A DNA stretch of 46,856 nucleotides from Macrostomum lignano (lineage: Eukaryota): NCBI GenBank assembly GCA_002269645.1, contig NIVC01002347.1, forward strand, positions 1 through 46,856, given 5' to 3'. The translations under genes and the position numbers were made by a program. Under the pieces are notes generated by a model. That model had not been told where the DNA came from. It saw nothing but the letters and a program-made list of their open reading frames with translations, and did not search any database. Numbering within the stretch: position 1 is the first letter of the stretch; each line of letters begins with the position of its first letter. Positions 20,212 through 46,856 of the stretch are shown one piece after another.

Positions 20212-20563
20212 CAGGAGAAATGCTGAAGCTGCTGCAGACGCGACTCTCGAGCATCGGCATCAGCTCCGTCCCTTTCAACGCCGACCCCACACTCAGCGGA
20301 GATCTTCTCTCCGAGAGGCTCAGACGCCTCATGAAGAAGCGCCTGTACAACGCCATCGTCATGGCGACGCCTCGCAACGCGCAAAGCATTGCGGCAGCCG
20401 CTGCGAACGCCAGCGTCATGCAGCAGAACTACTTCTGGCTCGTGATTGACAGCGGCGGACTCAGCAAGTCCCATCTGACACCGTTGTGTCCCAACAACTG
20501 CAACCTGGCTCTGCTCAGAGGAGGCACAACTGGCGTCAATCGGCCATCGACTGTCCGCCTGCA
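20212..20563 (+). CDS. Internal exon of the iGluR/ANF-receptor-like gene (rest of the gene not seen in the window)
   Basis: Acceptor TAG|CAG| in phase with the previous exon. RLMKKRLYNAIVMATPRNAQSIAAAAANASVMQQNYFWLVID matches the ATD 'iil....a..il..A....m....y.wi' pattern. High GC3. Donor CA|GTGAGA. Confidence 0.7.
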
Positions 20564-20627
20564 GTGAGAGACGTCTTTCCGAGCTGCGACACCGACAGCA
20601 TTCGGGTGAGCGCCAGCTGCCGTGTCG

Positions 20628-20960
20628 TGCCCTGCCCTGCCCTGCCCTGCCCTGCCCTGCCCTGCCCTGCCCTGCCCTGCCCTGCCCTGCCCTGCCCTGC
20701 CCTGCCCTGCCCTGCCCTGCCCTGCCCTGCCCTGCCCTGCCCTGCCCTGCCCTGCCCTGCCCTGCCCTGCCCTGCCCTGCCCTGCCCTGCCCTGCCCTGC
20801 CCTGCCCTGCCCTGCCCTGCCCTGCCCTGCCCTGCCCTGCCTGCTGCCCTGCCCTGCCCTGCCCTGCCCTGCCCTGCCCTGCCCTGCCCTGCCCTGCCCT
20901 GCCCTGCCCTGCCCTGCCCTGCCCCCTGCCCTGCCCTGCCCTGCCCTGCCCTGCCCTGCC
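20628..20960. repeat. (GCCCT)n pentanucleotide microsatellite
   Basis: About 66 near-perfect units. Confidence 0.98.
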
Positions 20961-21312
20961 TTGCTCAATCACCAACACACTGAGAGCATCAAAGTTTTAC
21001 ATTCCAAAAAACTATCAGCAGATCTTTGATTGACTACGAGCGTAACATGAGTAATTCTCGAATTTTAAATTTTTACTTCTGTCTCCTACTACTTATCAAG
21101 TGCGTTTAAGTAGTATTTACGCATGTTGAATTCTACGCTATTACCGCTAAGATAAAATAAGATAATCACTAGCAATCTTCGCCCCCCGTTGGGGGACATC
21201 TGTATAGAACCTCTGTTCTCTACAAGTAACAAAAAGATAGCCAAAAAAAGCCTTCGCAAAGAAAACAGACAAAATACTCAAAGGAAGTGCAATGCAAAAA
21301 GAAATCATTCCA

Positions 21313-21765
21313 AGACAGCAAGCATCCCCCAGATAGCAAGCATCCTCCAGATTGCAAGCAACCCCCGGATAGCAAGCATCCCCCAGATAGCAAGCATCCC
21401 CCAGATAGCAAGCATCCCTCAGATAGCAAGCATCCCCCAGATAGCAAGCATCCCCCAGATAGCAAGCATCCCCAAGATAGCAAGCATCCCCCAGATAGCA
21501 AGCATCCCCCAGATAGCAAGCATCCTCCAGATTGCAAGCAACCCCCGGATAGCAAGCATCCCCCAGATAGCAAGCATCCCCCAGATAGCAAGCATCCCCT
21601 AGATAGCAAACATCCCCCAGATAGCAAGCATCCCTCAGATAGCAAGCATCCCCCAGATAGCAAGCATCCCCCAGATAGCAAGCATCCCCCAGATAGCAAG
21701 CATCCCCCAGATAGCAAGCATTCCCTACATAGATAGCATCCCCAAATAGCAAGCATCCACCAGAC
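21313..21765. repeat. 18-bp minisatellite (AGATAGCAAGCATCCCCC)n within H1
   Basis: About 24 units. Confidence 0.95.
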
Positions 21766-21853
21766 AATAAGTAGCTAGTGCGACAATTTCCTTAGCATTA
21801 TAGTGGCTCCTTTAAAATTCGCTTACTTTTACGTTTGAAATTGTGTAAATTTT

Positions 21854-24290
21854 ATGTTTGACATGGTGGCTCTTTTATGTTCTACATGGCAACTCTTTTA
21901 TGTTTGAAACGATGGCTTTTTAATGTCTGACATGGTGGCTCTTTTATGTTTGACACAGTGGCCCTTTAATGTTCGACAAAGTGGCTATTTAATGTTTGAC
22001 AAGGTGGCTTTTAAATGTTTGACATGGTGGCTCCTTAATGTTCGAAATGGTGGCTCTTTAATGTATGACATAAAGACACATATATAATTGACCTGGTGGC
22101 TCTTAAATGTTTGACATGGTGGCTCTTTATTGTTTGACATAGTGGCTCTTTAATGATCGACAAAGTGGCTCTTTAATGTTCTTCATGGTATAGCTCTTTT
22201 ATGTTCGACATGGTGGCTCTTAAATGTTTGACATGGTGGCTCTTTAATGTTAGAAATGGTGGCTCTTTTGTTTGACATGGTGGCTCTTTAATATTCTACA
22301 TTGTGGCTCTTAAGTGTTCGAAATGGTGGATCTTTTAGGTTTGACATGATGGCTGTTTAATGTTTGACATGGTAGCTCTTTTATGTTGACATGGTAGCTC
22401 TTTTAGGTTTAACATGGTGGCTGTTTAATGTTTGACATGGTAGCTCTTTTATGTTGACATGGTAGCTCTTTTAGGTTTGACATGGTGGCTGTTTAATGTT
22501 CAACATAGTGGCTCTTTAATATTCTACATGGTGGCTCTTTTATGTTTAACATGGTGGCTCTTTTGTTTTACATGGTGGCTCTTTAATGTTTGACATAAAG
22601 TCACTTATATGTTCGAAATGGTGGCTCTTTAATATTTTACATTGTGGCTCTTAAGTGTTCGACATGGTGGCTCTTTTTGGTTTGACATGGTGGCTCTTTT
22701 ATGCTTGATATGGTGGCTCTCTAATGTTTAACATGGTGACTTTTAATGTTAGACATGGTGGCTCTTTAATGTTCGACATGGTTGCTCTTTGATATTCGAC
22801 AGGGTGGCTCTTAAATGTTTGATATGGTGGCTCTTTATGTTTGACATGTTGGCTCTTTTGTGTTTGACATGGTGGCTCTTTCATGTTTGACATGGTGGCT
22901 CTTTTTTGTTGAAATGGTGGCTCTTTTTTGTTCTACATGGTAACTCTTTTATATCTGATACGGTGGCTTTTTTAATGTCTGACATGTTGGCTCTTTTATG
23001 TTTGACATAGTGGCTCTTTAATGTTCAAAATGGTGGCTCTTTTATGTTTGACATGGTGGCTCTTTAATGATTGACATGGTGGCTCTTTTATGTTCGACAT
23101 GGTGGCTCTTTAATGTTCGAAATGGTGGCTTTTTAATGTTCAAAATAGTGGCTCTTTTATGTTCGACATGGTGGCTCTTTAATGTTCGAAATGGTGGCTC
23201 TTTAATGTACGACATAATGGCTCTTTAATGTTTGAAAATGTGGCTTTTGAATGTTTGACATGTTGGCTCTTTAATGTTTGACATGGTAGCTCTGTTATGT
23301 TCGACATGGTGGCTCTTTAATATTCTTCATGTTATAGCTCTTTCATGTTTGACATGGTGGCTCTTTAATGTTCGAAATAGTGGTTCTTTAATGTTCGAAA
23401 TGGTGGCTCTTTAATGTTTGACACAAAGTCACATTTATGTTTGACATGGTGGCTCCTAAATGTTTGACATGTTGGCTCTTTTATGTTTGACATGTTGGCT
23501 CTTTTATGTTTGACATAGTGGCTCTTTGATGTTCGAAATAGTGGCTCTTTTATGGTCGACATGGTGGCTCTTTAATGTTCGAAATGGTGGCTCTTTAATG
23601 TTCGAAAAAGTGGCTCTTTTATGTTCGACATGGTGGCTCTTTAATGTTCGAAATGGTGGCTGTTTAATGTTCGAAATGGTGGCTCTTTTATATTTGACAT
23701 AAAGTCACTTATATGTTTTACATGGTGCCTCTTAAATATTAGACATGGTGGCTCGTTTAGGTTTGACATGGTGGCTCTTTTATGTTTGACATGTTGGCTC
23801 TTTAATGTTCGACATGGTGGCTCTTCTATGTTCGAAATGGTGGCTTTTTAATGTTCAAAATAGTGGCTCTTTTATGTTCGACATGGTGGCTCTTTAATGT
23901 TCGAAATGGTGGCTCTTTAATGTACGACATAATGGCTCTATAATGTTTGACAATGTGGCTTTTGAATGTTTGACATGGTGGCTCTTTAATGTTTGACATG
24001 GTAGCTCTGTTATGTTCGACATGGTGGCTCTTTAATGTTTGACACAAAGTCACATTTATGTTTGACATGGTGGCTCCTAAATGTTTGACATGGTGGCTCT
24101 TTATGTTTGACATGTTGGCTCTTTTATGTTTGACATGTTGGCTCTTTTATGTTTGACATAGTGGCTCTTTGATGTTCGAAATAGTGGCTCTTTTATGGTC
24201 GACATGGTGGCTCTTTAATGTTCGACATGGTGGCTCTTTAATGTTCGAAATGGTGGCTGTTTAATGTTCGAAATGGTGGCTCTTTTATGT
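21854..24290. repeat. 23-bp minisatellite (GACATGGTGGCTCTTTAATGTTT)n within H1, diverged monomers
   Basis: 23-bp period. Internal duplication of about 715 bp (23136 versus 23851). Confidence 0.95.
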
Positions 24291-24338
24291 TTAGCAGTTT
24301 CGTGTTTTTAAGGTGTTTTAATAAAAAAAATCTTTTTT

Positions 24339-24401
24339 GCACTACTGAGATTCGAACCCAGGTCGCTACATTAGCATTCCAGTCTGTTCGCATCAGGGCT
24401 A
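24339..24401 (-). pseudogene. Degenerate tRNA-like cassette inside H1
   Basis: T-arm CTGGG-TTCGAAT-CTCAG with B box, TGCTAAT loop-like motif, downstream T8 run. Confidence 0.5.
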
Positions 24402-25129
24402 TCTTTTTTCAATTGGAGAACATGAATTGTGGCCCTTATAATTCAATTCTTACAGCAAGTCAATTAAAGTAAAAAGTTATGACATAATCAATTTCTCAGT
24501 CAGCCAGTATCAGTCTCAGTTCAAGTTAGCAATATTGGTTACGCAATTTAAATCAAGTCGTGTGTGCATTTTTCGACACTGTTTTCAACTTGTTGTGATG
24601 CAATCTTTATCAGAATTGAAATTCAGTCAGTCAGTTTTTTCTCTAGCATTCTTGCAATGCATTTCAAGTCGAAAATTTTGCTTGACCTTTGCAAAAAAGC
24701 ATGTTTTTCGAATATTTAATCCCTTTAGAATTGAGCAATTTCTTAGCCAAGATGCATGTACCGTCCCAGGAAAATTTCTGATCGAATGGTGCAAGTTTGA
24801 AGAAAATCGGTTGAGCCAATTTTTCTGAAATCTATCGCATACCTACCCACATACATACATACAGACAACTCATTTTTAGTATATAGGACTAGCAATCTAG
24901 TGCGGCCCCCTTCGGGGCGCCCAATAAGAAAGGAGCAAAAATAGTTCATGGAAAACAATAAAAAAACACATTTTCTTAAACACCAATTCCTTCTTCACAT
25001 TTAAAAAATCACCTTATTCGTGTAAAATTGTCACGGACTAAGATGTTTGCAAAATTAAAAAATCATTTTTTCTCTAAAATTAACAAACAGTCAACAAAAT
25101 ATCGTTTCCCTAAATAGAAAATATTCCCA

Positions 25130-25545
25130 AGACAGCAAGCAACCCCCTCCAAAAGTGAACAATCGCAGATAGCAAGCATCCTCTAATGCTCATAGCAAGA
25201 ATCACCACAGATAGCAAGCATCTGCAGATTAGCAAGCACCCCCCAGATGATATAGAAGCATCCACCCAGATAGCAAGCATTCTGCAGATAGCAAGCACCC
25301 CCCAGATATTATAGAAGCATCCTGCAGATAGCAAGCACCCCCAGATATTATAGAAGCATCCTGCAGATAGCAAGCAACCCCCAGATATTATAGAAGCATC
25401 CACCCAGATAGCAAGCATCCTGCAGATAGCAAGAATCCCTAAATAGCAAGCATCCCTGGATAGAAAGAATCCCATGCATGTGCCAGTACCCCTCTCCCAA
25501 ATAGCAAGTATCCCCCTCGAGAGCAAGCATCCACGAGACAGCAAG
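25130..25545. repeat. Diverged 18-bp family array within H2
   Basis: AGATAGCAAGCA(T/C)CC units with a local ~40-bp dimer (cagatattatagaagcatcctgcagatagcaagcacccc). Confidence 0.9.
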
Positions 25546-25569
25546 TAGCTAGTGCAAATGTTACTTCCG

Positions 25570-28500
25570 CTAATGCAATAATCGCTTTCTCAGGTTGTGC
25601 AACAATCCACGTCTCAGCGAGCACAATAATCTCTTTTTTAGACAGCGCAGTAATCAGCTTCTCAGCTAGTGCAATAATCCTTGGTTTATTAATAGCAATA
25701 ATCCTTGATTAATCAAGTGCAATAATCCTTGGTTTATCAAGTGCAATAATCCTTGGTTTATCAAGTGCAGTAATCTTTGGCTTATCAAGTGCAATAATCC
25801 TTGGTTTATCAAGTGCAATAATCCTTTGTTTATCAAGTGCAATAATCCTTGGTTTATCAAGTGCAATAATCCTTGGTTTATCAAGTGCAATAATCCTTGG
25901 TTTATTAAGTGCAATAATCCTTGGTTTATCAAGTGCAAAATTCCTTAGTTTATTAAGTGCAATAATCCTTGGTTTATCAAGTGCAATAATCCTTGCTTTA
26001 TCTAGCGCAGTAATCCTTGGCTTATCAAGTGCAATAATCCTTGGTTTATCAAGTGCAATAATCCTTGGCTTATCAACTGCAATAATCCTTGGTTTATCAA
26101 GTGAAATAATCCTTGGTTTATCAAGTGCAATAATCCTTGGCTTATCAACTGCAATAATCCTTGGTTTATCAAGTGCAATAATCCTTTGTTTATCAAGCGC
26201 AGTAATCCTTGGCCTATCAAGTGCAATATTTGTTTATCAAGTGCAATAATCCTTGGTTTATCAAGTGAAATAATCCTTGGTTTATCAAGCGCAGTAATCT
26301 TTGGCCTATCAAGTGCAATAATACTTGGTTTATCAAGTGCAGTAATCCTTGGCCTATCAAGTGCAATAATTCTTGGTTTAACAAGTGCAATAGTCCTTGG
26401 TTTATCGAGTGTAGTAATCCTTAGTTTTCCAAGTGCAGAAATCCTTGGTTTATTAAGAGCAATAATCCTTGGCTTATCGAGTGCAGTAATCCTTGGTTTG
26501 CCAAGAGCAATAATCCTTGGTTTATCGAGTGCAGTAATCCTTAGTTTTCTAAGTGCAGTAATCCTTGGTTTATTAACAGCAATAATCCTTGGCTTATCGA
26601 GTGCAGTAATCGTTGGTTTGCCAAGAGCAATAATCCTTGGTTTATCGAGTGCAGTAATCCTTAGTTTTCCAAGTGCAGTAATCCTTGGTTTATTAAGAGC
26701 AATAATCCTTGGTTTATCGAGTGCAGTAGTCCTTGGTTTATTAATAGCAATAATCCTTGAATAATCCAGCGCAATAATCCTTGGTTTATCAAGTGCAATA
26801 ATCCTTGGTTTATCAAGTGCAGTATTCCTTGGCCTATCAAGTGCAATATTCCTTGGTTTATCAAGTGCAATAATCCTTGGTTTATTAAGTGCAATAATCC
26901 TTGGTTTATCAAGTGCAATAATCCTTGGTTTATCTAGCGCAATAATCCTTGGCTTATCAAGTGCAATAATCCTTGGTTTATCAAGTGCAGTAATCCTTGG
27001 CCTATCAAGTGCAATAATCCTTGGTTTATCAAATGAAATAATCCTTGGTTTATCAAGTGCAATAATCCTTGGTTTATCAAGTGAAATAATCCTTGGTTTA
27101 TCAAGTGCAATAATACTTGGTTTATTAAGAGCAATAATCCTTGGCTTATCGAGTGCAGTAATCCTTGGTTTATCAAGTGCAATAATCCTTGGCTTATCAA
27201 GTGCAATAATCCTTGGTTTATCAAGTGCAATAATCCTTGGTTTATCAAGCGCAGTAATCCTTGGCCTATCAAGTGCAATAATCCTTGGCTTATCAAGTGC
27301 AATAATCCTTGGTTTATCGAGTGCAGTAATCCTTAGTTTTCCAAGTGCAGTAATCCTTGGTTTATTAAGAGCAATAATCCTTGGCTTATCGAGTGCAGTA
27401 GTCCTTGGTTTATTAATAGCAATAATCCTTGAATAATCCAGTGCATTAATCCTTGGCTTATCAAGTGCAACATTCTTTACTATCAAGTGCAATAATCCAT
27501 GGCTTATCAAGCGCTGTAATCCTTGGCTTATCAAGTGCAATAATCCTTGGTTTATCAAGTGCAATAATCCTTGGTTTATCAAGCGCAGTAATCCTTGGTT
27601 TATCAAGTGCAGTAATCCTTGGCTTATCAAGTGCAATAATCCTTGGTTTATCAAGTGCAATAATCCTTGGTTTATCAAGCGCAGTAATCCTTGGCCTATC
27701 AAGTGCAATAATCCTTGGCTTATCAAGTGCAATAATCCTTGGTTTATCGAGTGCAGTAATCCTTAGTTTTCCAAGTGCAGTAATCCTTGGTTTATTAAGA
27801 GCAATAATCCTTGGCTTATCAAGTGCAATAATCCTTGGTTTATCAAGTGCAGTAATCCTTGGCTTATCAAGTGCAATAATCCTTGGTTTATCAAGTGCAG
27901 TAATCCTTGGCCTATCAAGTGCAATAATCCTTGGTTTATCAAATGAAATAATCCTTGGTTTATCAAGTGCAATAATCCTTGGCTTATCAACTGCAATAAT
28001 CCTTGGTTTATCAAGTGCATCAATCCCTTGGTTTATCAAGTGCAAATCCTTGGCTTTATCAAGTGCAATAATCCTTGGTTTATCAAGTGCAATAATCCTT
28101 GGTTTATCAAGTGCAATAATCCTTGGTTTATCAAGTGCAGTAATCCTTGGTTTATCAAGTGCAATAATCCTTGGTTTATCAAGTGCAGTAATCCTTGGCT
28201 TATCAAGTGCAATAATCCTTGGTTTATCAAGTGCAATAATCCTTGGTTTATCAAGTGCAATAATCCTTGGTTTATCAAATGCAATAATCCTTGGTTTATC
28301 AAGTGCAATAATCCTTGGTTTATCAACTGCAATAATCCTTGGTTTATCAAGTGCAATAATCCTTGGTTTATCAAGTGCAGTAATCCTTGGCTTATCAAGT
28401 GCAATAATCCTTGGTTTATCAAGTGCAATAATCCTTGGTTTATCAAGTGCAATAATCCTTGGTTATCAAGTGCAATAATCCTTGGTTTATCAAGTGCAAA

Positions 28501-31500
28501 TCCTTGTTTATCAAGTGCAATAATCCTTGGTTTATCAAGTGCAAATAATCCTTGGTTTATCAAGTGCAATAATCCTTGGTTTATCAAGTGCAATAATCCT
28601 TGGTTTATCGAGTGCAATAATCCTTGGTTTATCAAGTGCAATAATCCTTGGCCTTTCAAGTGCAATAATCCTTGGCTTATCAAGTGCAATAATCCTTGAT
28701 TTATCGAGTGCAGTAATCCTTAGTTTTCCAAGTGCAGTAATCCTTGGTTTATTAAGAGCAATAATCCTTGGCTTATCGAGTGCAGTAGTCCTTGGTTTAT
28801 TAATAGCAATAATCCTTGAATAATCCAGTGCATTAATCCTTGGCTTATCAACTACAATAATCCTTGGTTTATCAAGTGCAATAATCCTTGGTTTATCAAG
28901 CGCAGTAATCCTTGGCCTATCAAGTGCAATAATCCTTGGCTTATCAAGTGCAATAATCCTTGGTTTATCGAGTGCAGTAATCCTTAGTTTTCCAAGTGCA
29001 GTAATCCTTGGTTTATTAAGAGCAATAATCCTTGGCTTATCGAGTGCAGTAGTCCTTGGTTTATTAATAGCAATAATCCTTGAATAATCCAGTGCATTAA
29101 TCCTTGGCTTATCAAGTGCAACATTCTTTACTATCAAGTGCAATAATCCATGGCTTATCAAGCGCTGTAATCCTTGGCTTATCAAGTGCAATAATCCTTG
29201 GTTTATCAAGTGCAATAATCCTTGGCTTATCAAGTGCAATAATCCTTGGTTTATCAAGTGCAATAATCCTTGGTTTATCAAGTGCAATAATCCTTGGTTT
29301 ATCAAGTGCAATAATCCTTGGTTTATCAAGCGCAGTAATCCTTGGCCTATCAAGTGCAGTAATCCTTGGCTTATCAAGTGCAATAATCCTTGGTTTATCA
29401 AGTGCAAAAGTTGTTTATCAAGTGCAATAATCCTTGGTTTATCAAGTGCAATAATCCTTGGTTTATCAAGCGCAGTAATCCTTGGCTTATCAAGTGCAAT
29501 AATCCTTGGTTTATCAAGTGCAAAAGTTGTTTATCAAGTGCAATAATCCTTGGTTTATCAAGTGCAATAATCCTTGGTTTATCAAGTGCAAAAGTTGTTT
29601 ATCAAGTGCAATAATCCTTGGTTTATCAAGTGCAATAATCCTTGGTTTATCAAGCGCAGTAATCCTTGGCTTATCAAGTGCAATAATCCTTGGTTTATCA
29701 AGTGCAAAAGTTGTTTATCAAGTGCAATAATCCTTGGTTTATCAAGCGAAATAATCCTTGGTTTATCAAGTGCAATAATCCTTGGTTTATTAAGAGCAAT
29801 AATCCTTGGCTTATCGAGTGCAGTAATCCTTGGTTTATCAAGTGCAATAATCCTTGGCTTATCAAGTGCAATAATCCTTGGTTTATCAAGTGCAATAATC
29901 CTTGGTTTATCAAGCGCAGTAATCCTTGGCCTTTCAAGTGCAATAATCCTTGGCTTATCAAGTGCAATAATCCTTGGTTTATCGAGTGCAGTAATCCTTA
30001 GTTTTCCAAGTGCAGTAATCCTTGGTTTATTAAGAGCAATAATCCTTGGCTTATCGAGTGCAGTAGTCCTTGGTTTAATAATAGCAATAATCCTTGAATA
30101 ATCCAGTGCATTAATCCTTGGCTTATCAAGTGCAACATTCTTTATTATCAAGTGCAATAATCCATGGCTTATCAAGCGCTGTAATCCTTGGCTTATCAAG
30201 TGCAATAATCCTTGGTTTATCAAGTGCAATAATCCTTGGCTTTTCAAGTGCAATAATCCTTGGTTTATCAAGTGCAATAATCCTTGGCTTATCGAGTGCA
30301 GTAATCCTTGGTTTATCAAGTGAAATAATCCTTGGCTTATCAAGTGCAATAATCCTTGGTTTATCAAGTGAAATAATCCTTGGTTTATCAAGTGCAATAA
30401 TCCTTGGCTTATCAAGTGCAATAATCCTTGGTTTATCAAGTGCAATAATCCTTGGTTTATCAAGCGCAGTAATCCTTGGCCTATCAAGTGCAATAATCCT
30501 TGGCTTATCAAGTGCAATAATCCTTGGTTTATCAAGCGCAGTAATCCTTGGCCTATCAAGTGCAATAATCCTTGGCTTATCAAGTGCAATAATCCTTGGT
30601 TTATCGAGTGCAGTAATCCTTAGTTTTCCAAGTGCAGTAATCCTTGGTTTATTAAGAGCAATAATCCTTGGCTTATCGAGTGCAGTAATCCTTGGTTTAT
30701 CAAGTGAAATAATCCTTGGCTTATCAAGTGCAATAATTCTTGGTTTATCAAGTGAAATAATCCTTGGTTTATCAAGTGCAATAATCCTTGGCTTATCAAC
30801 TGCAATAATCCTTGGTTTATCAAGTGCAATAATCCTTGGTTTATCAAGCGCAGTAATCCTTGGCCTATCAAGTGCAATAATCCTTGGCTTATCAAGTGCA
30901 ATAATCCTTGGTTTATCGAGTGCAGTAATCCTTAGTTTTCCAAGTGCAGTAATCCTTGGTTTATTAAGAGCAATAATCCTTGGCTTATCGAGTGAAGTAA
31001 TCCTTGGTTTATCAAGTGAAATAATCCTTGGCTTATCAAGTGCAATAATCCTTGGCTTATCAAGTGCAATAATCCTTGTTTTATCAAGTGCAATAATCCT
31101 TGGTTTATCAAGCGCAGTAATCCTTGGCCTATCAAGTGCAGTAATCCTTGGCTTATCAAGTGCAATAATCCTTGGTTTATCAAGTGCAGTAATCCTTGGC
31201 CTATCAAGTGCAATAATCCTTGGTTTATCAAATGAAATAATCCTTGGTTTATCAAGTGCAATAATCCTTGGCTTATCAACTGCAATAATCCTTGGTTTAT
31301 CAAGTGCAATAATCCTTGGTTTATCAAGCGCAGTAATCCTTGGCTTATCAAGTGCAATAATCCTTGGTTTATCAAGTGCAAAAGTTGTTTATCAAGTGCA
31401 ATAATCCTTGGTTGATCAAGTGCAATAATCCTTGGTTTATCAAGCGCAGTAATCCTTGGCTTATCAAGTGCAATAATCCTTGGTTTATCAAGTGCAAAAG

Positions 31501-34500: not shown

Positions 34501-37500
34501 CAAGCGCTGTAATCCTTGGCTTATCAAGTGCAATAATCCTTGGTTTATCAAGTGCAATAATCCTTGGCTTTTCAAGTGCAATAATCCTTGGTTTATCAAG
34601 TGCAATAATCCTTGGTTTATCAAGCGCAGTAATCCTTGGCTTATCAAGTGCAATAATCCTTGGTTTATCAAGTGCAAAAGTTGTTTATCAAGTGCAATAA
34701 TCCTTGGTTTATCAAGTGCAATAATCCTTGGTTTATCAAGCGCAGTAATCCTTGGCTTATCAAGTGCAATAATCCTTGGTTTATCAAGTGCAAAAGTTGT
34801 TTATCAAGTGCAATAATCCTTGGTTTATCAAGTGAAATAATCCTTGGTTTATCAAGTGCAATAATCCTTGGTTTATTAAGAGCAATAATCCTTGGCTTAT
34901 CGAGTGCAGTAATCCTTGGTTTATCAAGTGCAATAATCCTTGGCTTATCAAGTGCAATAATCCTTGGTTTATCAAGTGCAATAATCCTTGGTTTATCAAG
35001 CGCAGTAATCCTTGGCCTTTCAAGTGCAATAATCCTTGGCTTATCAAGTGCAATAATCCTTGGTTTATCAATAATCCTTGATCGAGTGCAGTAATCCTTA
35101 GTTTTCCAAGTGCAGTAATCCTTGGTTTATTAAGAGCAATAATCCTTGGCTTGTCGAGTGCAGTAGTCCTTGGTTTATTAATAGCAATAATCCTTGAATA
35201 ATCCAGTGCATTAATCCTTGGCTTATCAAGTGCAACATTCTTTATTATCAAGTGCAATAATCCATGGCTTATCAAGCGCTGTAATCCTTGGCTTATCAAG
35301 TGCAATAATCCTTGGTTTATCAAGTGCAATAATCCTTGGCTTTTCAAGTGCAATAATCCTTGGTTTATCAAGTGCAATAATCCTTGGCTTATCAAGTGCA
35401 ATAATCCTTGGTTTATCAAGTGCAATAATCCTTGGTTTATCAAGCGCAGTAATCCTTGGCCTTTCAAGTGCAATAATCCTTGGCTTATCAAGTGCAATAA
35501 TCCTTGGTTTATCGAGTGCAGTAATCCTTAGTTTTCCAAGTGCGGTAATCCTTGGTTTATTAAGAGCAATAATCCTTGGCTTATCGAGTGCAGTAATCCT
35601 TGGTTTATCAAGTGAAATAATCCTTGGCTTATCAAGTGCAATAATCCTTGGTTTATCAAGTGAAATAATCCTTGGTTTATCAAGTGCAATAATCCTTGGC
35701 TTATCAAGTGCAATAATCCTTGGTTTATCAAGTGCAATAATCCTTGGTTTATCAAGCGCAGTAATCCTTGGCCTATCAAGTGCAATAATCCTTGGCTTAT
35801 CAAGTGCAATAATCCTTGGTTTATCAAGCGCAGTAATCCTTGGCCTATCAAGTGCAATAATCCTTGGCTTATCAAGTGCAATAATCCTTGGTTTATCGAG
35901 TGCAGTAATCCTTAGTTTTCCAAGTGCAGTAATCCTTGGTTTATTAAGAGCAATAATCCTTGGCTTATCGAGTGCAGTAATCCTTGGTTTATCAAGTGAA
36001 ATAATCCTTGGCTTATCAAGTGCAATAATCCTTGGTTTATCAAGTGAAATAATCCTTGGTTTATCAAGTGCAATAATCCTTGGCTTATCAAGTGCAATAA
36101 TCCTTGTTTTATCAAGTGCAATAATCCTTGGTTTATCAAGCGCAGTAATCCTTGGCCTATCAAGTGCAATAATCCTTGGCTTATCAAGTGCAATAATCCT
36201 TGGTTTATCGAGTGCAGTAATCCTTAGTTTTCCAAGTGCAGTAGTCCTTGGTTTATTAATAGCAATAATCCTTGAATAATCCAGTGCATTAATCCTTGGC
36301 TTATCAAGTGCAACATTCTTTACTATCAAGTGCAATAATCCTTGGTTTATCAAGCGCAGTAATCCTTGGCTTATCAAGTGCAATAATCCTTGGTTTATCA
36401 AGTGCAATAATCCTTGGTTTATCAAGCGCAGTAATCTTTGGCCTATCAAGTGCAATAATCCTTGGCTTATCAACTGCAATAATCCTTGGTTTATCAAGTG
36501 CAATAATCCTTGGTTTATCAAGCGCAGTAATCCTTGGTTTATCAAGTGAAATAATCCTTGGCTTATCAAGTGCAATAATCCTTGGTTTATCAAGTGAAAT
36601 AATCCTTGGTTTATCAAGTGCAATAATCCTTGGCTTATCAACTGCAATAATCCTTGGTTTATCAAGTGCAATAATCCTTGGTTTATCAAGCGCAGTAATC
36701 CTTGGCCTATCAAGTGCAATAATCCTTGGCTTATCAAGTGCAATAATCCTTGGTTTATCGAGTGCAGTAATCCTTAGTTTTCCAAGTGCAGTAATCCTTG
36801 GTTTATTAAGAGCAATAATCCTTGGCTTATCGAGTGCAGTAATCCTTGGTTTATCAAGTGAAATAATCCTTGGCTTATCGAGTGCAGTAATCCTTGGTTT
36901 ATCAAGTGAAATAATCCTTGGCTTATCAAGTGCAATAATCCTTGGCTTATCAAGTGCAATAATCCTTGGTTTATCAAGTGCAATAATCCTTGGTTTATCA
37001 AGCGCAGTAATCCTTGGCCTATCAAGTGCAGTAATCCTTGGCTTATCAAGTGCAATAATCCTTGGTTTATCAAGTGCAGTAATCCTTGGCCTATCAAGTG
37101 CAATAATCCTTGGTTTATCAAATGAAATAATCCTTGGTTTATCAAGTGCAATAATCCTTGGCTTATCAACTGCAATAATCCTTGGTTTATCAAGTGCAAT
37201 AATCCTTGGTTTATCAAGCGCAGTAATCCTTGGCTTATCAAGTGCAATAATCCTTGGTTTATCAAGTGCAAAAGTTGTTTATCAAGTGCAATAATCCTTG
37301 GTTTATCAAGTGCAATAATCCTTGGTTTATCAAGCGCAGTAATCCTTGGCTTATCAAGTGCAATAATCCTTGGTTTATCAAGTGCAAAAGTTGTTTATCA
37401 AGTGCAATAATCCTTGGTTTATCAAGTGCAATAATCCTTGGTTTATCAAGCGCAGTAATCCTTGGCTTATCAAGTGCAATAATCCTTGGTTTATCAAGTG

Positions 37501-38843
37501 CAAAAGTTGTTTATCAAGTGCAATAATCCTTGGTTTATCAAGTGAAATAATCCTTGGTTTATCAAGTGCAATAATCCTTGGTTTATTAAGAGCAATAATC
37601 CTTGGCTTATCGAGTGCAGTAATCCTTGGTTTATCAAGTGCAATAATCCTTGGCTTATCAAGTGCAATAATCCTTGGTTTATCAAGTGCAATAATCCTTG
37701 GTTTATCAAGCGCAGTAATCCTTGGCCTTTCAAGTGCAATAATCCTTGGCTTATCAAGTGCAATAATCCTTGGTTTATCGAGTGCAGTAATCCTTAGTTT
37801 TCCAAGTGCAGTAATCCTTGGTTTATTAAGAGCAATAATCTTTGGCTTGTCGAGTGCAGTAGTCCTTGGTTTATTAATAGCAATAATCCTTGAATAATCC
37901 AGTGCATTAATCCTTGGCTTATCAAGTGCAACATTCTTTATTATCAAGTGCAATAATCCATGGCTTATCAAGCGCTGTAATCCTTGGCTTATCAAGTGCA
38001 ATAATCCTTGGTTTATCAAGTGCAATAATCCTTGGCTTTTCAAGTGCAATAATCCTTGGTTTATCAAGTGCAATAATCCTTGGCTTATCAAGTGCAATAA
38101 TCCTTGGTTTATCAAGTGCAATAATCCTTGGTTTATCAAGCGCAGTAATCCTTGGCCTATCAAGTGCAATAATCCTTGGCTTATCAAGTGCAATAATCCT
38201 TGGTTTATCGAGTGCAGTAATCCTTAGTTTTCCAAGTGCGGTAATCCTTGGTTTATTAAGAGCAATAATCCTTGGCTTATCGAGTGCAGTAATCCTTGGT
38301 TTATCAAGTGAAATAATCCTTGGCTTATCAAGTGCAATAATCCTTGGTTTATCAAGTGAAATAATCCTTGGTTTATCAAGTGCAATAATCCTTGGCTTAT
38401 CAAGTGCAATAATCCTTGTTTATCAAGTGCAATAATCCTTGGTTTATCAAGCGCAGTAATCCTTGGCCTATCAAGTGCAATAATCCTTGGCTTATCAAGT
38501 GCAATAATCCTTGGTTTATCGAGTGCAGTAATCCTTAGTTTTCCAAGTGCAGTAGTCCTTGGTTTATTAATAGCAATAATCCTTGAATAATCCAGTGCAT
38601 TAATCCTTGGCTTATCAAGTGCAACATTCTTTACTATCAAGTGCAATAATCCTTGGTTTATCAAGCGCAGTAATCCTTGGCTTATCAAGTGCAATAATCC
38701 TTGGTTTATCAAGTGCAATAATCCTTGGTTTATCAAGCGCAGTAATCTTTGGCCTATCAAGTGCAATAATCCTTGGTTTATCGAGTGCAGTAATCCTTGG
38801 TTTTTCAAGTGCAATAATCCTTGGCTTATCGAGTGCAGTAATC
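25570..38843. repeat. 24-bp satellite (TCAAGTGCAATAATCCTTGGTTTA)n, about 550 units, within H2
   Basis: 24-bp period, recurrent variant monomers, diverged monomers at the left edge. Confidence 0.98.
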
Positions 38844-38907
38844 TAAGTGTTTTTATTTAGTCCTTTAATAAAACCTTTTAATAAAAAATTTTACACTACT
38901 ACTTTTA

Positions 38908-38969
38908 AACTACTTAGATTCGAACCTAGGTCGCTGCATTAGCAGTCTGGTCTGTTCAGCTCTAGGCTA
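38908..38969 (-). pseudogene. Degenerate tRNA-like cassette inside H2
   Basis: TAGCCTAG..CCAGA-CTGCTAA-TGCAG-CGAC-CTAGG-TTCGAAT-CTAAG: A-box-like, anticodon-loop-like and B-box/T-arm segments at near-canonical tRNA spacing. Confidence 0.55.
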
Positions 38970-40139
38970 GCTCTCATCGAAGTTATCAGTGATGTTGTAC
39001 CACTTATATAATTCAACACTCACACCAAGTCAGGTAGAGTAAAAAGTCTCACGAAGCAGTTATGACATAATCAATTTCTTAGGCAAGTCAGTACCAGTGT
39101 CTATGAAAGTTTACAATATGGTTACGTAATATAAATTCAGTACTGCGCTATGCTTTCACACTCAAAGCTGTGACGCAATTCAATTGAGTGTCAAATTCAG
39201 CCAGTACACAGACGATAAATAAAGTGTATTGTGATGCAATCTATTTCAGAATCAGAATTCAACCAGTGAGTTTTTCTGCTAGCATTCTTACAATGCATTT
39301 CAAGTCGAAAGAGCTGCTTGACCTTTGCAAAAAAGCATGTTTTTCGAATATTTAATCCCTTTAATATTGAGCAATTTCTTAGCCAAGATGCATGTACCGT
39401 CACGGAAAAATTTCTGATCGAATGGTGCAAATTCGAAGAAAATCGGTTGAGCCGTTTTTGCTAAAATCGATCACACACACACATATATACCGACAGACCA
39501 TTTTTAGTATATGGAAGATTTAGTATATTTAGATGTAAGATAAAATAAAGCAAGTTTTTGTTTAAGTCAATAACGACTCAAAAAGTTCTGCCATTATGCG
39601 TATATAAGCTACTGAGTATAGCGGCTTAATCACTGTTTTTTATACGATTATTGGCTGTATACAACACACCAAATCGGAACACAGTATAGCTATCGTAATC
39701 GTGGTGATTCTTGACCTTCTCAGTACATTCTCAGTATGATAAAATCTTTGAAAATATTGAGGCTCCGATAATGGAGAAATGGGGATAGCAGAGGCGTCGC
39801 CAACGGAGGGGACAGGGGGACATGTCCCACCAGTAAATGATCTGGGGGGGGGGCATGCTAATGCTTTTTCCTCCCCACCCCACCTAGTGACCCGTTAATG
39901 CTTTAAAATTGCTTTATTAACTATGAGCTACATTTTTAACAGTTTTTGCTCTTTTAACCCAAGTAATTGTGTTTTGTGACGAATATAGTCTTCTACTAGC
40001 AATCTTCGCCCCCCGTTGGGGGACATCTGGATAGAATCTCTGTTCTCTACAAGTAACAAAAAGACAGCCAAAAAAAGCCTTCACAAAGACGACAGACAAA
40101 CTGCTCAAATAAAGTGTAATGCAAAAAGAAATCATCCCA

Positions 40140-40290
40140 AGACAGCATGAAGCATCCCCCAGATAGCAAGCATCCCCAGATTGCAAGCAGATAGCAAGCT
40201 ATCCCCCAGATAGCAAGCATCCCCCAGATAGGAAGCATCCCCCTCCCGGATAGCAAGCATCCCCAAATAGTAAGCATCCACCATACAATA
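40140..40290. repeat. Short 18-bp family array within H3
   Basis: AGATAGCAAGCATCCCCC units. Confidence 0.9.
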
Positions 40291-40379
40291 AGAAGCTAGT
40301 GCTACAATTTCCTTAGCTCTATAGTGGCTCCTTTAAAATTGGCACGACGCTTACTTTTATGTATGAAATTGCGTAAATT

Positions 40380-43300
40380 TTATGTTTGACATGGCGGCTC
40401 TTCAATGTTCGTCATGGTGGCTCTTTAATGTTCGACATGGTAGCTCTTTTATGTTTGACATGGAGTCACGAATATACTTGACATGGTGACTCGTTAATGT
40501 TCGACATGGTGGCTCTATAATGTTAGACATGGTGGCTCTTTAATGTTTGACATGGTGGCTCTATAATGTTTGACATGGAGTCACAAATATGTTAGACATG
40601 GTGGCTCTTTAATGTTCGACATGGTGCCGCTTTAATTTTTGACATTATGGCTCTTTAATGTTTGACATGGTGGCTTTTTTATGTTCGACATGGTGGTTCT
40701 CTTATGTTCGACATAGTGGCTCTTTTATGCTTGACATGGTGGCTCTTTACTGTTTGACATGGAGTCACATATATGTTTGACATGGTGGCTCTTTTATGTT
40801 TGACATGGTGGCTCTTTTATGTTTGACATGGTGGCTCTTTAATGTTCGACATGGTGGCTCTTTTATGTTTGACATGGTGGCTCTTCTGTGTTCGACATGG
40901 TGGCTCTCTAATGTTTGACATTGCGGCTCCTTAATGCTTGACATGGTGGCTCTTTTATGTTGGACATGGTGGTTCTTTTATGTTCGACATGGTGGCTCTT
41001 TAATGCTTGACATGGTGGCTCTTTACTGTTTGACATGGAGTCACATATATGTTTGACATGGTGGCTCTTTTATGTTTGAAATGGTGGCCCTTTACTGTTT
41101 GACATGGTTGCTGTTTCAAGTTTGACATGGTGGCTCTTTAATGTTCGACATGGTGGCTCTTTAATGTTTGACATGGTGGCTCTTTAATGTTCGACATGGT
41201 GGCTCTTTTATGTTTGACATGGTGGCTCTTTTATGTTTGACATGGTGGCTCTTTAATGTTCGACATGGTGGCTCTTTTATGTTCGACATGGTGGCTCTTT
41301 TATGTTCGACATAGTGGCTCTTTTATGTTTGACATGATAGCTCTTTTATGTTTGAAATGTTGTCTCTGTTATGTTCGACATAGTGGCTCTTGAATGTTAG
41401 ACATGGTGGCTCTTTAATGTTTGACATGGTGGCTCTTTAATGTTCGACATGGAGTCATATATATGTTTGACATGGTGGCTCTTTAATGTTTGATAGCATG
41501 TATATGTTTTACATGGTGGCTCTTTAATGTTCGACATGGTGGCTCTTTTATGTTTGACATGGTGGCTCTTCTGTGTTCGACATGGTGGCTCTCTAATGTT
41601 TGACATTGCGGCTCCTTAATGCTTGACATGGTGGCTCTTTTATGTTGACATGGTGGTTCTTTTATGTTCGACATGGTGGCTCTTTTATGCTTGACATGGT
41701 GGCTCTTTACTGTTTGACATGGAGTCACATATATGTTTGACATGGTGGCTCTTTTATGTTTGAAATGGTGGCCCTTTTATGTTTGACATGGTGGCTCTTT
41801 TATGTTAGACATGGTGGCTCTTTAATGTTTGACATGGTGGCTCTATAATGTTTGACATGGAGTCACGAATATGTTCGACATGGTGGCTCTTTAATGTTCG
41901 ACATGGTGCCGCTTTAATTTTTGACATTATGGCTCTTTAATGTTTGACATGGTGGCTTTTTTATGTTCGACATGGTGGTTCTCTTATGTTCGACATAGTG
42001 GCTCTTTTATGCTTGACATGGTGGCTCTTTACTGTTTGACATGGAGTCACATATATGTTTGACATGGTGGCTCTTTTATGTTTGACATGGTGGCTCTTTT
42101 ATGTTTGACATGGTGGCTCTTTAATGTTCGACATGGTGGCTCTTTTATGTTTGACATGGTGGCTCTTCTGTGTTCGACATGGTGGCTCTCAAATTTTTGA
42201 CATTGCGGCTCCTTAATGCTTGACATGGTGGCTCTTTTATGTTGGACATGGTGGTTCTTTTATGTTCGACATGGTGGCTCTTTTATGCTTGACATGGTGG
42301 CTCTTTACTGTTTGACATGGAGTCACATATATGTTTGACATGGTGGCTCTTTTATGTTTGAAATGGTGGCCCTTTTATGTTTGACATGGTGGCTCTTTTA
42401 TGTTAGACATGGTGGCTCTTTAATGTTCGACATGGTGGCTCTTTAATGTTAGACATGGTGGCTCTTTCATGTTAGACATGGTGGCTCTTTAATGTTAGAC
42501 ATGGTGGCTCTTTAATGTTAGACATGATGGCTCTTTAATGTTTGACATGGTGGCTCTTTTATGTTCGACATGGTGGCTCTTTTATGTTCGACATGATGGT
42601 TCTTTTATGTTAGACATGGTGGCTCTTTTATGCTTGACATGGTGGCTCTTTACTGTTTGACATGGTTGCTGTTTCAAGTTTGACATGGTGGCTCTTTAAT
42701 GTTCGACATGGTGGCTCTTTAATGTTTGACATGGTGGCTCTTTAATGTTCGACATGGTGGCTCTTTTATGTTTGACATGGTGGCTCTTTTATGTTTGACA
42801 TGGTGGCTCTTTAATGTTCGACATGGTGGCTCTTTTATGTTCGACATGGTGGCTCTTTTATGTTCGACATGGTGGCTCTTTTATGTTTGACATGATAGCT
42901 CTTTTATGTTTGAAATGTTGTCTCTGTTATGTTCGACATAGTGGCTCTTGAATGTTAGACATGGTGGCTCTTTATTGTTTGACATGGTGGCTCTTTAATG
43001 TTCGACATGGAGTCATATATATGTTTGACATGGTGGCTCTTTAATGTTTGACAGCATGTATATGTTTTACATGGTGGCTCTTTAATGTTCGACATGGTGG
43101 CTCTTTTATGTTTGACATGGTGGCTCTTCTGTGTTCGACATGGTGGCTCTCTAATGTTTGACATTGCGGCTCCTTAATGCTTGACATGGTGGCTCTTTTT
43201 TGTTGGACATGGTGGTTCTTTTATGTTCGACATGGTGGCTCTTTTATGTTTGACATGGTGGCTCTTTACTGTTTGACATGGAGTCACATATATGTTTGAC

Positions 43301-45932
43301 ATGGTGGCTCTTTTATGTTTGAAATGGTGGCCCTTTTATGTTTGACATGGTGGCTCTTTTATGTTAGACATGGTGGCTCTTTAATGTTTGACATGGTGGC
43401 TCTATAATGTTTGACATGGAGTCACGAATATGTTCGACATGGTGGCTCTTTAATGTTCGACATGGTGCCGCTTTAATTTTTGACATTATGGCTCTTTAAT
43501 GTTTGACATGGTGGCTTTTTTATGTTCGACATGGTGGTTCTCTTATGTTCGACATAGTGGCTCTTTTATGCTTGACATGGTGGCTCTTTACTGTTTGACA
43601 TGGAGTCACATATATGTTTGACATGGTGGCTCTTTTATGTTTGACATGGTGGCTCTTTTATGTTTGACATGGTGGCTCTTTAATGTTCGACATGGTGGCT
43701 CTTTTATGTTTGACATGGTGGCTCTTCTGTGTTCGACATGGTGGCTCTCAAATTTTTGACATTGCGGCTCCTTAATGCTTGACATGGTGGCTCTTTTTTG
43801 TTGGACATGGTGGTTCTTTTATGTTCGACATGGTGGCTCTTTTATGTTTGACATGGTGGCTCTTTACTGTTTGACATGGAGTCACATATATGTTTGACAT
43901 GGTGGCTCTTTTATGTTTGAAATGGTGGCCCTTTTATGTTTGACATGGTGGCTCTTTTATGTTAGACATGGTGGCTCTTTAATGTTCGACATGGTGGCTC
44001 TTTAATGTTAGACATGGTGGCTCTTTCATGTTAGACATGGTGGCTCTTTAATGTTAGACATGGTGGCTCTTTAATGTTAGACATGATGGCTCTTTAATGT
44101 TTGACATGGTGGCTCTTTTATGTTCGACATGGTGGCTCTTTTATGTTCGACATGATGGTTCTTTTATGTTAGACATGGTGGCTCTTTTATGCTTGACATG
44201 GTGGCTCTTTACTGTTTGACATGGTTGCTGTTTCAAGTTTGACATGGTGGCTCTTTAATGTTCGACATGGTGGCTCTTTAATGTTTGACATGGTGGCTCT
44301 TTAATGTTCGACATGGTGGCTCTTTTATGTTTGACATGGTGGCTCTTTTATGTTTGACATGGTGGCTCTTTAATGTTCGACATGGTGGCTCTTTTATGTT
44401 CGACATGGTGGCTCTTTTATGTTCGACATGATGTTTGACATGATAGCTCTTTTATGTTTGAAATGTTGTCTCTGTTATGTTCGACATAGTGGCTCTTGAA
44501 TGTTAGACATGGTGGCTCTTTAATGTTTGACATGGTGGCTCTTTAATGTTCGACATGGAGTCATATATATGTTTGACATGGTGGCTCTTTAATGTTTGAT
44601 AGCATGTATATGTTTTACATGGTGGCTCTTTAATGTTCGACATGGTGGCTCTTTTATGTTTGACATGGTGGCTCTTCTGTGTTCGACATGGTGGCTCTCT
44701 AATGTTTGACATTGCGGCTCCTTAATGCTTGACATGGTGGCTCTTTTATGTTGGACATGGTGGTTCTTTTATGTTCGACATGGTGGCTCTTTTATGCTTG
44801 ACATGGTGGCTCTTTACTGTTTGACATCGAGTCACATATATGTTTGACATGGTGGCTCTTTTATGTTTGAAATGGTGGCCCTTTTATGTTTGACATGGTG
44901 GCTCTTTTATGTTAGACATGGTGGCTCTTTAATGTTCGACATGGTGGCTCTTTAATGTTGGACATTGTGGCTCTTTATTGTTCGAAATTGTGGCTTTTTA
45001 ATGTTCTACATTGTGGCTCTTTAATGTTCTACATATTGTGGCTCTTTAATCTTCGACATGGTGGCTCTTTAATGTTTGACATTGTGGCTCTTTAATGTTC
45101 TACATTGTGGCTCTTTATTGTTTGACATGATGGCTTTTTAATGTTTGACATCATGGCTCTTTAATGTTCTACATTGTGGCTCTTTAATGTTCTACATTGT
45201 GGCTCTTTAACGTTCGACAGGGTGGCTCTTAATGTTTGACATTAAGTCACGTATGTGTTAGACATGGGGTCATGTATATATTTGGCATGGAGTCACATAT
45301 ATGCTTTACATGGTGGCTCTTTAATGTTTGACATGTTGGCTCTTTAATGTGTGACATAGTGGCTCTTTAATGTTTGACATGGAGTCATGTAAATATTTGG
45401 CATGGAGTCACGTATATGTTTGACATGGTGGCTCTTTAATGTTTGACATGGTGGCTCTTTTATGTTTGACATAATGTCTCTTTAATGTTTGACATGGTGG
45501 CTCTTTTATGTTTGACATTATGGCTCTTTAATGTTCGACATGGTGGCTGTTTAATGTTTGTTATGGAGTCATATGTATATGTTTTACATGGTGGCTCTTT
45601 TATGTGTGACATGGAGTCACGTATATATTTGACATGGAGTCACATATATGTTTGACATGTTGGCTCTTTAATGTGTGACATAGTGGCTCTTTAATGTTTG
45701 ACATGGAGTCATTTATATTTTTGGCATGGAGTCACATGGTGGCTCTTTAATTTTTGACATGGGCTCTTTAATTTTTGACATAGTGGCTCTTAATGTTTGA
45801 CATGCTCTTTAATTTTGACATAGTGGCTCTTTAATTTTTGACATAGTGGCTCTTTAATGTTTGACATGGTTGCTCCTTACCATATGACATGGTGGCTCTT
45901 TAATGTTTGACATGGAGTCACGTATGTGTTTG
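40380..45932. repeat. 23-bp satellite array within H3 (about 240 units) with ~1.55-kb higher-order repeats
   Basis: 23-bp period. Diagnostic variant blocks recur at +1558 and +1548/1549. Confidence 0.97.
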
Positions 45933-45974
45933 ACTGCTCAAATGAAGCGCAATGCAAAAAGAAAACATCCCAAA

Positions 45975-46210
45975 ACAGCAAGCATCCCCCCTCCCCCCCA
46001 GATAGCAAGCACCCCCAGATAGCAAGCACCCCCAGATAGCAAGCACCCCCAGATAGCAAGCACCCCCAGATAGCAAGCACCCCCAGATAGCAAGCACTCC
46101 AGATAGCAAGCACCCCCAGATAGCAAGCATCCCTCAGATAGCAAGCACCCCAGATAGAAAGAACCCCCAGATAGCAAGTATCTATCCTTAAATAGCAAGC
46201 ATCCACCAGA
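45975..46210. repeat. 17/18-bp family array of a second, internally duplicated module
   Basis: AGATAGCAAGCACCCCC units, preceded by sequence homologous to 40100-40150. Confidence 0.9.
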
Positions 46211-46299
46211 CAAAAAGTATATAGTGCAACATTTCCTTTTAGCTTTCTAGGGGCTCCTTTATGATTGGCATGACGCTTCTTATTACGTTTGAAAATCTC

Positions 46300-46856
46300 T
46301 CTGTGTTTGAAATGGTGACTATTTTATGTTTGAATTGGTGGCTTTTTAATGTTCTATACATCGTGGCTCTTTAATGTTTGACATCTTGCCAGTTTTATGT
46401 CTGTCATGGTGGCTCCTTACTGTTAGAAACGGTGGCTCTTTAATGTTTGACATGGAGTCACATATATGTTTCACATGGTGGCTCTTCTATGTCTAACTTG
46501 GTAGCTCTTTATGTTTGGACATCGCTGGCTCGCTTAATGTTCTACATTGTGGCTCTTTAATGTTCTACATGGTGGCTCTTTAGTGTTTGACATGGTGGCT
46601 CTATAATGTTTGGCATGGAGTCACGTATATGTTTGACATGGTGGCTCTTTAGTGTTCGATATGGTGGCTCTTTAATGTTTGACATAGTGGCTCTTAATTT
46701 TTGACATGGTGGCTCTTTAATGTTTGACATGGAGTCACGTATGTGTTTGACATGGAGTCACTATTATGTTAGACATGGTGGCTCTTTAATGTTGACATGG
46801 TGGCCCTTTAATGTTCGACATCGGTGGCTCTTTATGTTCGAAATTGTGGCTCTTTA
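46300..46856. repeat. 23-bp satellite array of the second module, runs off the window end
   Basis: GACATGGTGGCTCTTTAATGTTT family. Confidence 0.92.

Follow-up and report, generated by a model that had tools for sequence, protein, structure and literature searches.

The complete contig NIVC01002347.1 of Macrostomum lignano, a free-living flatworm (assembly GCA_002269645.1; 46,856 bp, referred to here as the window), contains, at 21169–46856 (~26 kb), a cluster of non-coding, co-oriented and adjoining units, named H1, H2, H3 and the fourth unit, which raises the question of what kind of element these units represent and how the tandem arrays inside them came about. M. lignano is a model for regeneration and stem-cell research. 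More than half of the M. lignano genome is repetitive, with simple and tandem repeats making up 15% of assembly Mlig_3_7, an unusually high load that made the genome hard to assemble (PMC5730564). Duplicated blocks with ≥95% identity amount to ~180 Mb in the sequenced DV1 line (PMC5730564). Judging from the sequence, the cluster probably consists of copies of a non-autonomous Helitron (rolling-circle transposon) of canonical type, belonging to at least two subfamilies with a common 5′ end: type A (H1, H3 and the fourth unit, which is truncated) and type B (H2).

All four units read on the minus strand and are given here in plus-strand coordinates (Table 1). H1 (3,720 bp) and H2 (14,630 bp) differ greatly in length, and all units follow a shared order: 3′ region, 18-mer array, a conserved GCTAGTGC junction and a large 23- or 24-mer array. 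Tandem arrays were called with Tandem Repeats Finder and by direct reading of the sequence, and both bear out the array positions and the order given in an initial annotation of this DNA; the junction (..CATCCAC[C/G]AGACA..AAGTAGCTAGTGC) is conserved in all four units. That annotation also distinguished three minus-strand elements, of which the three 3′ ends (at 21169, 24889 and 39996) stand, while H3 is not one simple element. Its 23-mer array is directly abutted at 45934/45935 by the fourth unit, which lacks the last ~105 nt, including hairpin and CTAG, leaving one of the four units without its 3′ terminus, and whose own 23-mer array runs off the contig end. This H3/fourth-unit junction stems from a deletion or recombination and is not a transposon boundary.

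Canonical Helitrons begin with 5′-TC, end with CTRR-3′, carry a 16–20-nt palindrome ~11 nt (10–12) from the 3′ end, have no inverted repeats and insert between A and T without target duplication (PMC4067079, PMC4778049). The features of this set seen here are a TC 5′ terminus, a CTRR 3′ terminus (CTAG, 3/3), a 3′ palindrome and a lack of terminal inverted repeats, and these, together with the lack of a target-site duplication (TSD), support the structural assignment to Helitrons made initially. Because neither terminal or subterminal inverted repeats nor a TSD were found, the ends fit a canonical Helitron, and not a Helentron/HINE or a miniature inverted-repeat transposable element (MITE).

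Ends and boundaries of the units

Each intact 3′ end (H1, H2 and H3) consists of a small G+C hairpin, a spacer of 9–12 nt and CTAG. H1 and H3 read GTCCCCCAACGGGGGGCGAAGATTGCTAG, the last 29 nt being identical, hairpin and CTAG included, and H2 reads GCGCCCCGAAGGGGGCCGCACTAGATTGCTAG. Folded as single-stranded DNA, all three have a 5-bp G:C stem ending 13 nt from the terminus, within palindromes of 13–19 nt. A generic scan for a hairpin followed by CTRR (stem without mismatches, ≥5 bp long and containing ≥4 G/C, loop of 3–6 nt, end 6–14 nt before CTRR, both strands) returned exactly three sites in the window, namely the 3′ ends of H1, H2 and H3, against a mean of 0.78 sites in shuffled windows. 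The same scan gave no sites in 55.8 kb of other M. lignano sequence, comprising two loci reached via paralogous FOXRED2 genes. Since H1 and H3 are homologous, the three sites amount to two independent observations, not three. Reading, folding and scan agree with the GC-rich hairpin ~10 nt before CTAG that had been noted initially in each of the three elements.

The three sites coincide with the points where homology between units ends. H1 and H3 are 92% identical in the 3′ region and 85% in the spacer, and this homology stops exactly at CTAG; the flanks beyond CTAG are unrelated, and the three 3′ ends have three different neighbours. The 3′ region of H2 is homologous to those of H1 and H3 only over the last ~30 nt (~72%), with the last 9 nt (GATTGCTAG) identical. 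H1 has a second palindrome (GTAGAGAAC..GTTCTATAC, 34–55 nt from the 3′ end), but it is degenerate in H3 and missing from H2, and is thus not a family feature.

At the opposite end, H1 and H2 begin TC..ATATACTAAAAATG and share ~600 bp of 5′ sequence (85% identity in the first 292 bp and 72% in another 237 bp), so that the TC starts proposed for both in the initial annotation are borne out. The 5′ end of H1 (TCCTATATACTAAAAATG, from 24888 downward) starts with TCCTATATAC at 24888 and is fixed by the adjoining CTAG of H2, which is joined to the TC of H1 at 24888/24889 with no intervening base. Exact head-to-tail junctions of CTAG with TC are a known Helitron signature (PMC5876387); bats and plants provide documented cases of such junctions and of tandem Helitrons, and the junctions also arise when Helraiser forms circles (PMC5876387, PMC4778049).

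The start of H2 (TCTTCCATATACTAAAAATG, from 39518 downward) is ambiguous by 3 nt: it is TCTTCC at 39518, flanked by A, or, equally well by alignment with H1, TCC at 39515, flanked by T. A 10-nt copy of the terminal ATATACTAAA (39503–39512) recurs 16 nt outward in the flank (39519–39528). This sequence could reflect either a small duplication of the 5′ terminus or what is left of another copy, and it makes a third boundary, A followed by TCTAAATATAC at 39533, possible. The 477-bp segment between H2 and H3 (39519–39995) contains no long open reading frame (ORF), and a G9 run lies next to C-rich runs at ~39780–39880.

The nucleotide following CTAG is T in 3/3 ends, and no direct repeat adjoins the ends of the H1+H2 block. 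The position of this block between A and T without a TSD, as initially described, holds for the 3′ T and for the lack of duplication, and for the 5′ A with the boundary at 39518, while the 5′ boundary of H2 itself is ambiguous. A 13-nt sequence (TAAGATAAAATAA) found on both sides of the block, at 21148–21160 (9 nt from the 3′ end) and 39536–39548 (18 nt from the 5′ end), was considered as a TSD and rejected; because it is not adjacent to the termini and has E = 0.11 in the window, it is treated as a chance match, probably due to AT-rich DNA.

Inverted repeats were sought by aligning the reverse complement of each 5′ 40 nt with the 3′ 120 nt. The best matches, of 7–19 nt, were equalled by 122–489 of 500 shuffles, and a search for a hairpin or inverted repeat at the element 5′ ends found none. 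With inverted matches at chance level and no adjoining direct repeat, the ends are not those of an element with terminal inverted repeats and a TSD, in line with the initial annotation.

The same comparison bears on the alternative, which we regard as unlikely, that the units are non-autonomous derivatives of Helentrons (HINE/DINE-1-like) that would owe their mobility to a Rep/helicase/endonuclease partner and insert at TT. Helentrons, HINEs and DINE-1 have subterminal inverted repeats (subTIRs) of 12–15 bp, located 2–4 nt from the 5′ end and 38–60 nt from the 3′ end (PMC4067079), and Helentrons and HINEs have a palindrome 8–35 nt from the 3′ end and insert at TT with terminal T-runs (PMC4067079). 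With a GTCY-type microsatellite close to the 5′ end, tandem repeats in the middle and a 3′ palindrome, the units match the HINE layout (PMC4067079, PMC7492417), a resemblance of layout only, but no 5′/3′ subterminal inverted repeat is detectable, and the 5′ ends have neither an inverted repeat nor a hairpin. The extra palindrome of H1 lies roughly at the position of the palindromic subTIR of mite HINEs, yet it has no 5′ counterpart and is not kept intact in H3 or present in H2. H2, if it started with TCC (39515), would lie between T and T; this is possible only for H2 and only under that alternative boundary, and the ends read TC.../...CTAG without terminal T-runs.

Interior of the units and growth of the arrays

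The 5′ regions of H1 and H2 share a conserved T-arm-like motif (GGTTCGAATC) followed by a T-run. This part had been described initially as a tRNA-like cassette, a description that does not hold beyond the motif and T-run: ARAGORN identified 0 tRNA genes, and Rfam gave no tRNA match either at the gathering score or at E ≤ 10. That the units are a tRNA-derived short interspersed element (SINE), or a MITE or foldback element, with internal tandem repeats is highly improbable and already largely refuted. Conservation of the motif and T-run in both H1 and H2 would suit a SINE, but the motif lies ~500 nt inside the element, not at its head, and no tRNA was recovered even at the relaxed threshold. 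MITEs with internal arrays are known (PMC12628747), but the units have neither terminal inverted repeats nor a TSD, and they do not end in an A-rich or simple-repeat tail. The units showed no captured gene fragments, and no protein matches were found for a 97-aa ORF in the conserved 5′ region or a 206-aa ORF covering 18-mer array, 3′ end and flank.

In each of the four units the large array starts at the same position, directly following the conserved GCTAGTGC motif. The relationship between array and spacer was assessed by scoring each monomer consensus against the spacer of each unit, with 1000 shuffles. For the 23-mer, the number of shuffles scoring as well was 7 (H1), 27 (H3), 1 (fourth unit) and 578 (H2); for the 24-mer, it was 0/1000 for H2 and 120–165/1000 for H1, H3 and the fourth unit. 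As the latter matches are not significant, only positional homology of the array start is claimed. The 23-mer thus matches the type-A spacers and the 24-mer only that of H2, which suggests that one internal site spawned different minisatellites in each subfamily. A common origin of the two monomers was considered and rejected, as they are unrelated (scores 4–5). That three units (H1, H3 and the fourth unit) have the same 23-mer family speaks for the repeat being carried by the element.

Higher-order structure was read from exact k-mer offsets, self-BLAST alignments spanning the whole array. Neighbouring monomers within arrays differ by 15–21%; H2 holds exact repeats of up to 673 bp spaced at kb offsets, and the dominant periodicity of H3 is 1,559 bp. 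Among the 46-mers of H3, 72% recur inside the array and 0% are shared with H1 or the fourth unit. Because these kb-scale exact duplications are private to each array and no 46-mers are shared, the arrays grew in place by large-block duplication after the copies had separated, not by dispersal of ready-made arrays.

Such growth demonstrably involves kb-scale local duplication, and the whole cluster might be seen as a composite satellite locus in which a multi-kb unit was duplicated locally by unequal exchange, the TC, hairpin and CTAG being coincidental. We consider this improbable. All units are indeed adjacent and co-oriented, and no member of the family was found in the 55.8 kb of other M. 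lignano DNA (two loci), but the 477-bp segment separating H2 from H3 has no match elsewhere in the window, and the units are 8–28% diverged, so they are not recent tandem duplicates. The H3/fourth-unit junction is clearly recombinational; elsewhere, the three hairpin and CTAG sites, unique in the window, fall on the unit boundaries, with H1/H3 homology ending precisely there in unrelated flanks. H1 and H2 differ in 3′ region and array type, yet share the hairpin-GATTGCTAG and the 5′ end.

If the units are canonical Helitrons, established Helitron biology implies that a RepHel protein provided in trans would copy them in single-stranded form, nicking at the 5′ TC, unwinding in the 5′ to 3′ direction and stopping at the hairpin/CTAG signal, the copy then being pasted between host nucleotides without target duplication. 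The direct joining of H2 CTAG to H1 TC would most likely result from insertion of H2 at the A-T site formed by the 5′ junction of H1 itself; on this reading H2 should be preceded by an A, and it is if the boundary is placed at 39518. Since H2 and H1 belong to different subfamilies, rolling-circle read-through of one template is unlikely. Within each element, a fixed site just downstream of the GCTAGTGC motif would be prone to tandem duplication, with different adjacent stretches amplified in each subfamily, the 23-mer in one and the 24-mer in the other. Slippage, together with unequal exchange of blocks of kb size, would then have enlarged each array in place, so that 78% of H1 and ~92% of H2 is now array sequence. 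A later deletion or recombination at the H3/fourth-unit junction would have removed one 3′ terminus and, presumably, one 5′ end.

Several observations weigh against assignment of the units to canonical Helitrons. The stems are short (5 bp), and folding of the 62-nt end is significant only for H1 (z −3.45; H2 −1.67; H3 −0.76). The A flanking the 5′ end of H2 depends on the choice of boundary (39518 or 39515), and the 5′ neighbour of H1 is the G of the H2 CTAG, not A. The interior, with its 5′ GTCT/GTAT microsatellite, central repeats and 3′ palindrome, looks closer to that of Helentron-derived HINEs than to that of typical Helitrons. The case for mobility comes from three 3′ ends and two 5′ ends at a single locus, with neither an empty site nor a RepHel partner found, the M. 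lignano assembly and proteome not having been searched, and local duplication could also yield four co-oriented, adjacent units.

Table 1 Units of the Helitron-like cluster and tandem arrays elsewhere in the window (plus-strand coordinates).
Feature	Position	Strand	Details
60-mer array	2548–3378		14 copies, 92% matches; without Helitron ends
(CTAT)n array	4335–4871		without Helitron ends
16-mer array	13264–20054 (6.8 kb)		CACCAAGGGGCTTTAG, ~425 copies, 98% matches; without Helitron ends
(CTGCC)n array	20617–20964		~69 copies; without Helitron ends
H1 3′ region	21169–21312	-	CTAG 21169–21172; 5-bp G:C hairpin 21182–21195
H1 18-mer array	21313–21764	-	AGATAGCAAGCATCCCCC, 25 copies, 90% matches
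H1 spacer	21765–21849	-	starts with conserved AAGTAGCTAGTGC; degenerate proto-copies of 23-mer
H1 23-mer array	21850–24292	-	TTTAATGTTTGACATGGTGGCTC, 106 copies, 79% matches
H1 5′ region	24293–24888	-	T-arm-like motif and T-run ~24320–24400; (GTAT/GTCT)n ~24838–24866; TCCTATATACTAAAAATG 24871–24888
H2 3′ region	24889–25164	-	CTAG 24889–24892 abuts H1 TC; G:C hairpin ends 13 nt from terminus
H2 derivative of 18-mer array	25165–25545	-	40/59/79-bp higher-order units of AGATAGCAAGCA.. and ATAGAAGCATCC..
H2 spacer	25546–25667	-	conserved AAGTAGCTAGTGC, then degenerate 24-mers (63% matches)
H2 24-mer array	25668–38843	-	AGTGCAATAATCCTTGGTTTATCA, 552 copies, 85% matches; kb-scale internal duplications
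H2 5′ region	38844–39518	-	homologous to that of H1; T-arm-like motif ~38905–38975; (GT/GTAT)n; terminus TCTTCCATATACTAAAAATG
Flanking segment H2–H3	39519–39995	.	477 bp, no match elsewhere in window
H3 3′ region	39996–40149	-	92% identical to that of H1
H3 18-mer array and spacer	40150–40377	-	array 40150–40283 (~7.7 copies); spacer 40284–40377
H3 23-mer array	40378–45934 (Tandem Repeats Finder 40378–45915)	-	~240 copies, 81% matches; 1,559-bp duplication dominant
Fourth unit, truncated	45935–46856	-	~60 nt of 3′ region; 17-mer array 45995–46178; spacer 46179–46303; 23-mer array

Known tandem-repeat-carrying elements

In their ends the units resemble canonical non-autonomous animal Helitrons such as HelibatN, of which Helraiser is a reconstructed autonomous relative, with TC/CTAG termini and a palindrome ~11–13 nt from the 3′ end. 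Further points in common are the lack of inverted repeats and TSD, the T after the 3′ end, the exact CTAG-TC junctions and the occurrence of copies that share a 5′ end and have diversified 3′ regions (PMC4778049, PMC5876387). Unlike in HelibatN and Helraiser, 78–92% of the element is tandem array here, with no captured gene fragments seen, and the stem is 5 bp, compared to a 19-nt palindrome in Helraiser. In their interior the units are closer to Drosophila DINE-1/DINE-TR1 and other HINEs, which are non-coding, with a 5′ microsatellite, a 3′ stem-loop and central tandem repeats able to expand into satellite-like arrays (PMC4067079, PMC12628747). However, the 12–15-bp subTIRs and TT insertion with T-runs of HINEs were not found here, and the 3′ end is CTAG.

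Helitron and Helentron elements commonly combine conserved ends with central satellite-like arrays, and one family can carry unrelated arrays; one-sided arrays occur, and scrambled loci of truncated and nested copies are frequent (PMC12628747, PMC7492417). The Cg_HINE elements of the oyster Crassostrea gigas (carrying Cg170 and other satellite DNA-like arrays) are similar to the present units in having related flanks and unrelated monomers, two arrays per element, ‘intermediate’ one-sided arrays and scrambled nested or truncated loci (PMC7492417, PMC12628747). They differ in having short arrays, monomers of ~100–170 bp and subTIRs, compared with monomers of 17–24 bp, arrays of up to 13 kb and Helitron-type ends here. 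Tandem and centromeric Helitron arrays of plants (Xiong, Dooner & Du 2016), as outlined in PMC12628747, also have head-to-tail units with truncated units inside. In that outline, the plant arrays consist of truncated, near-identical copies, with a single 3′ end and many 5′ ends, the pattern that rolling-circle read-through should give (PMC12628747), whereas the adjoining H2 and H1 are of different subfamilies, which speaks for insertion at the 5′ junction of a resident copy.

Each of the features observed thus has a precedent, and with the pattern already well known from flies and oysters, the cluster is a new example, not a new phenomenon. What is specific is the flatworm host, the ends of canonical Helitron type (not Helentron type), the very short monomers and the extreme share of the element taken up by arrays. 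No report of tandem-repeat-carrying Helitron elements in a flatworm was found, nor any paper tying the repeat load of M. lignano to rolling-circle elements, and the papers on M. lignano consulted here that mention Helitrons describe none in this species. Exact-pattern scans of metagenome contigs (33-nt 5′ block and 27-nt 3′ end) and of viral contigs (5′ block and 18-mer dimer) were empty, flatworm DNA not being expected in either.

A broader proposal would be that a canonical-Helitron family with a HINE-like interior (5′ microsatellite and a ‘hot’ site spawning 17–24-bp minisatellites) is a major source of the tandem-repeat load of M. lignano (15%), new copies preferring resident 5′ junctions and building head-to-tail transposon-satellite islands. 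This is doubtful as it stands. The initial annotation similarly proposed that a mobile family may seed and disperse minisatellites, grow to >14 kb with intact ends and account for much of the repeat load, and the evidence within the window on this is mixed: the 23-mer family shared by three units favours carriage by the element, while on the other side stand the in-place growth of the arrays, the lost terminus of one unit and ~8.5 kb of array outside the units that has no Helitron ends (compared with ~22.8 kb inside them). If the family were abundant, it would provide a concrete source for part of the M. lignano repeat load and add a flatworm and canonical-Helitron example to the transposons that seed satellites. 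For repeat annotation, recognising these ends would let arrays be assigned to elements. Since the phenomenon is already established in general biology, the gain is incremental.

Other features of the window

The 60-bp minisatellite at 2548–3378, located just upstream of a C2H2 zinc-finger gene, has two unit subtypes and ORFs in several frames. The zinc-finger gene itself (3451–5334) is annotated as encoding 410 aa, but its ORF in the genomic sequence continues without a stop to 627 aa; within the gene, the (CTAT)n array, presumably intronic, is in frame and encodes a long ‘LSIY’ repeat in this ORF.

The 16-mer array occupies almost all of the intron that separates two exon-like segments of a receptor-like gene lacking annotation (context 12850–20570), the splice acceptor apparently being provided by the last, variant units of the array (..GGGGCGCCAG). 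The conceptual product of this gene has a weak match to the ANF_receptor ligand-binding domain (E 3.9e-5, just below the Pfam cutoff). The (CTGCC)n array directly follows the exon-like segment ending at ~20565, within ~600 bp before the H1 3′ end, and this arrangement suggests that one of the introns of the receptor-like gene may harbour the Helitron cluster, in antisense orientation.

On the minus strand, a 468-aa ORF at 9684–11090 matches the M. lignano FOXRED2-like protein BOX15_Mlig023517g1 with 100% identity, and two homeologous FOXRED2 proteins are 95% and 91% identical. In one comparison stretch (L001, contig NIVC01004469.1), a 1,301-aa ORF encoding reverse transcriptase, RNaseH and integrase (long terminal repeat retrotransposon; 17628–21533) lies inside the span of the FOXRED2 paralogue and is presumably intronic.

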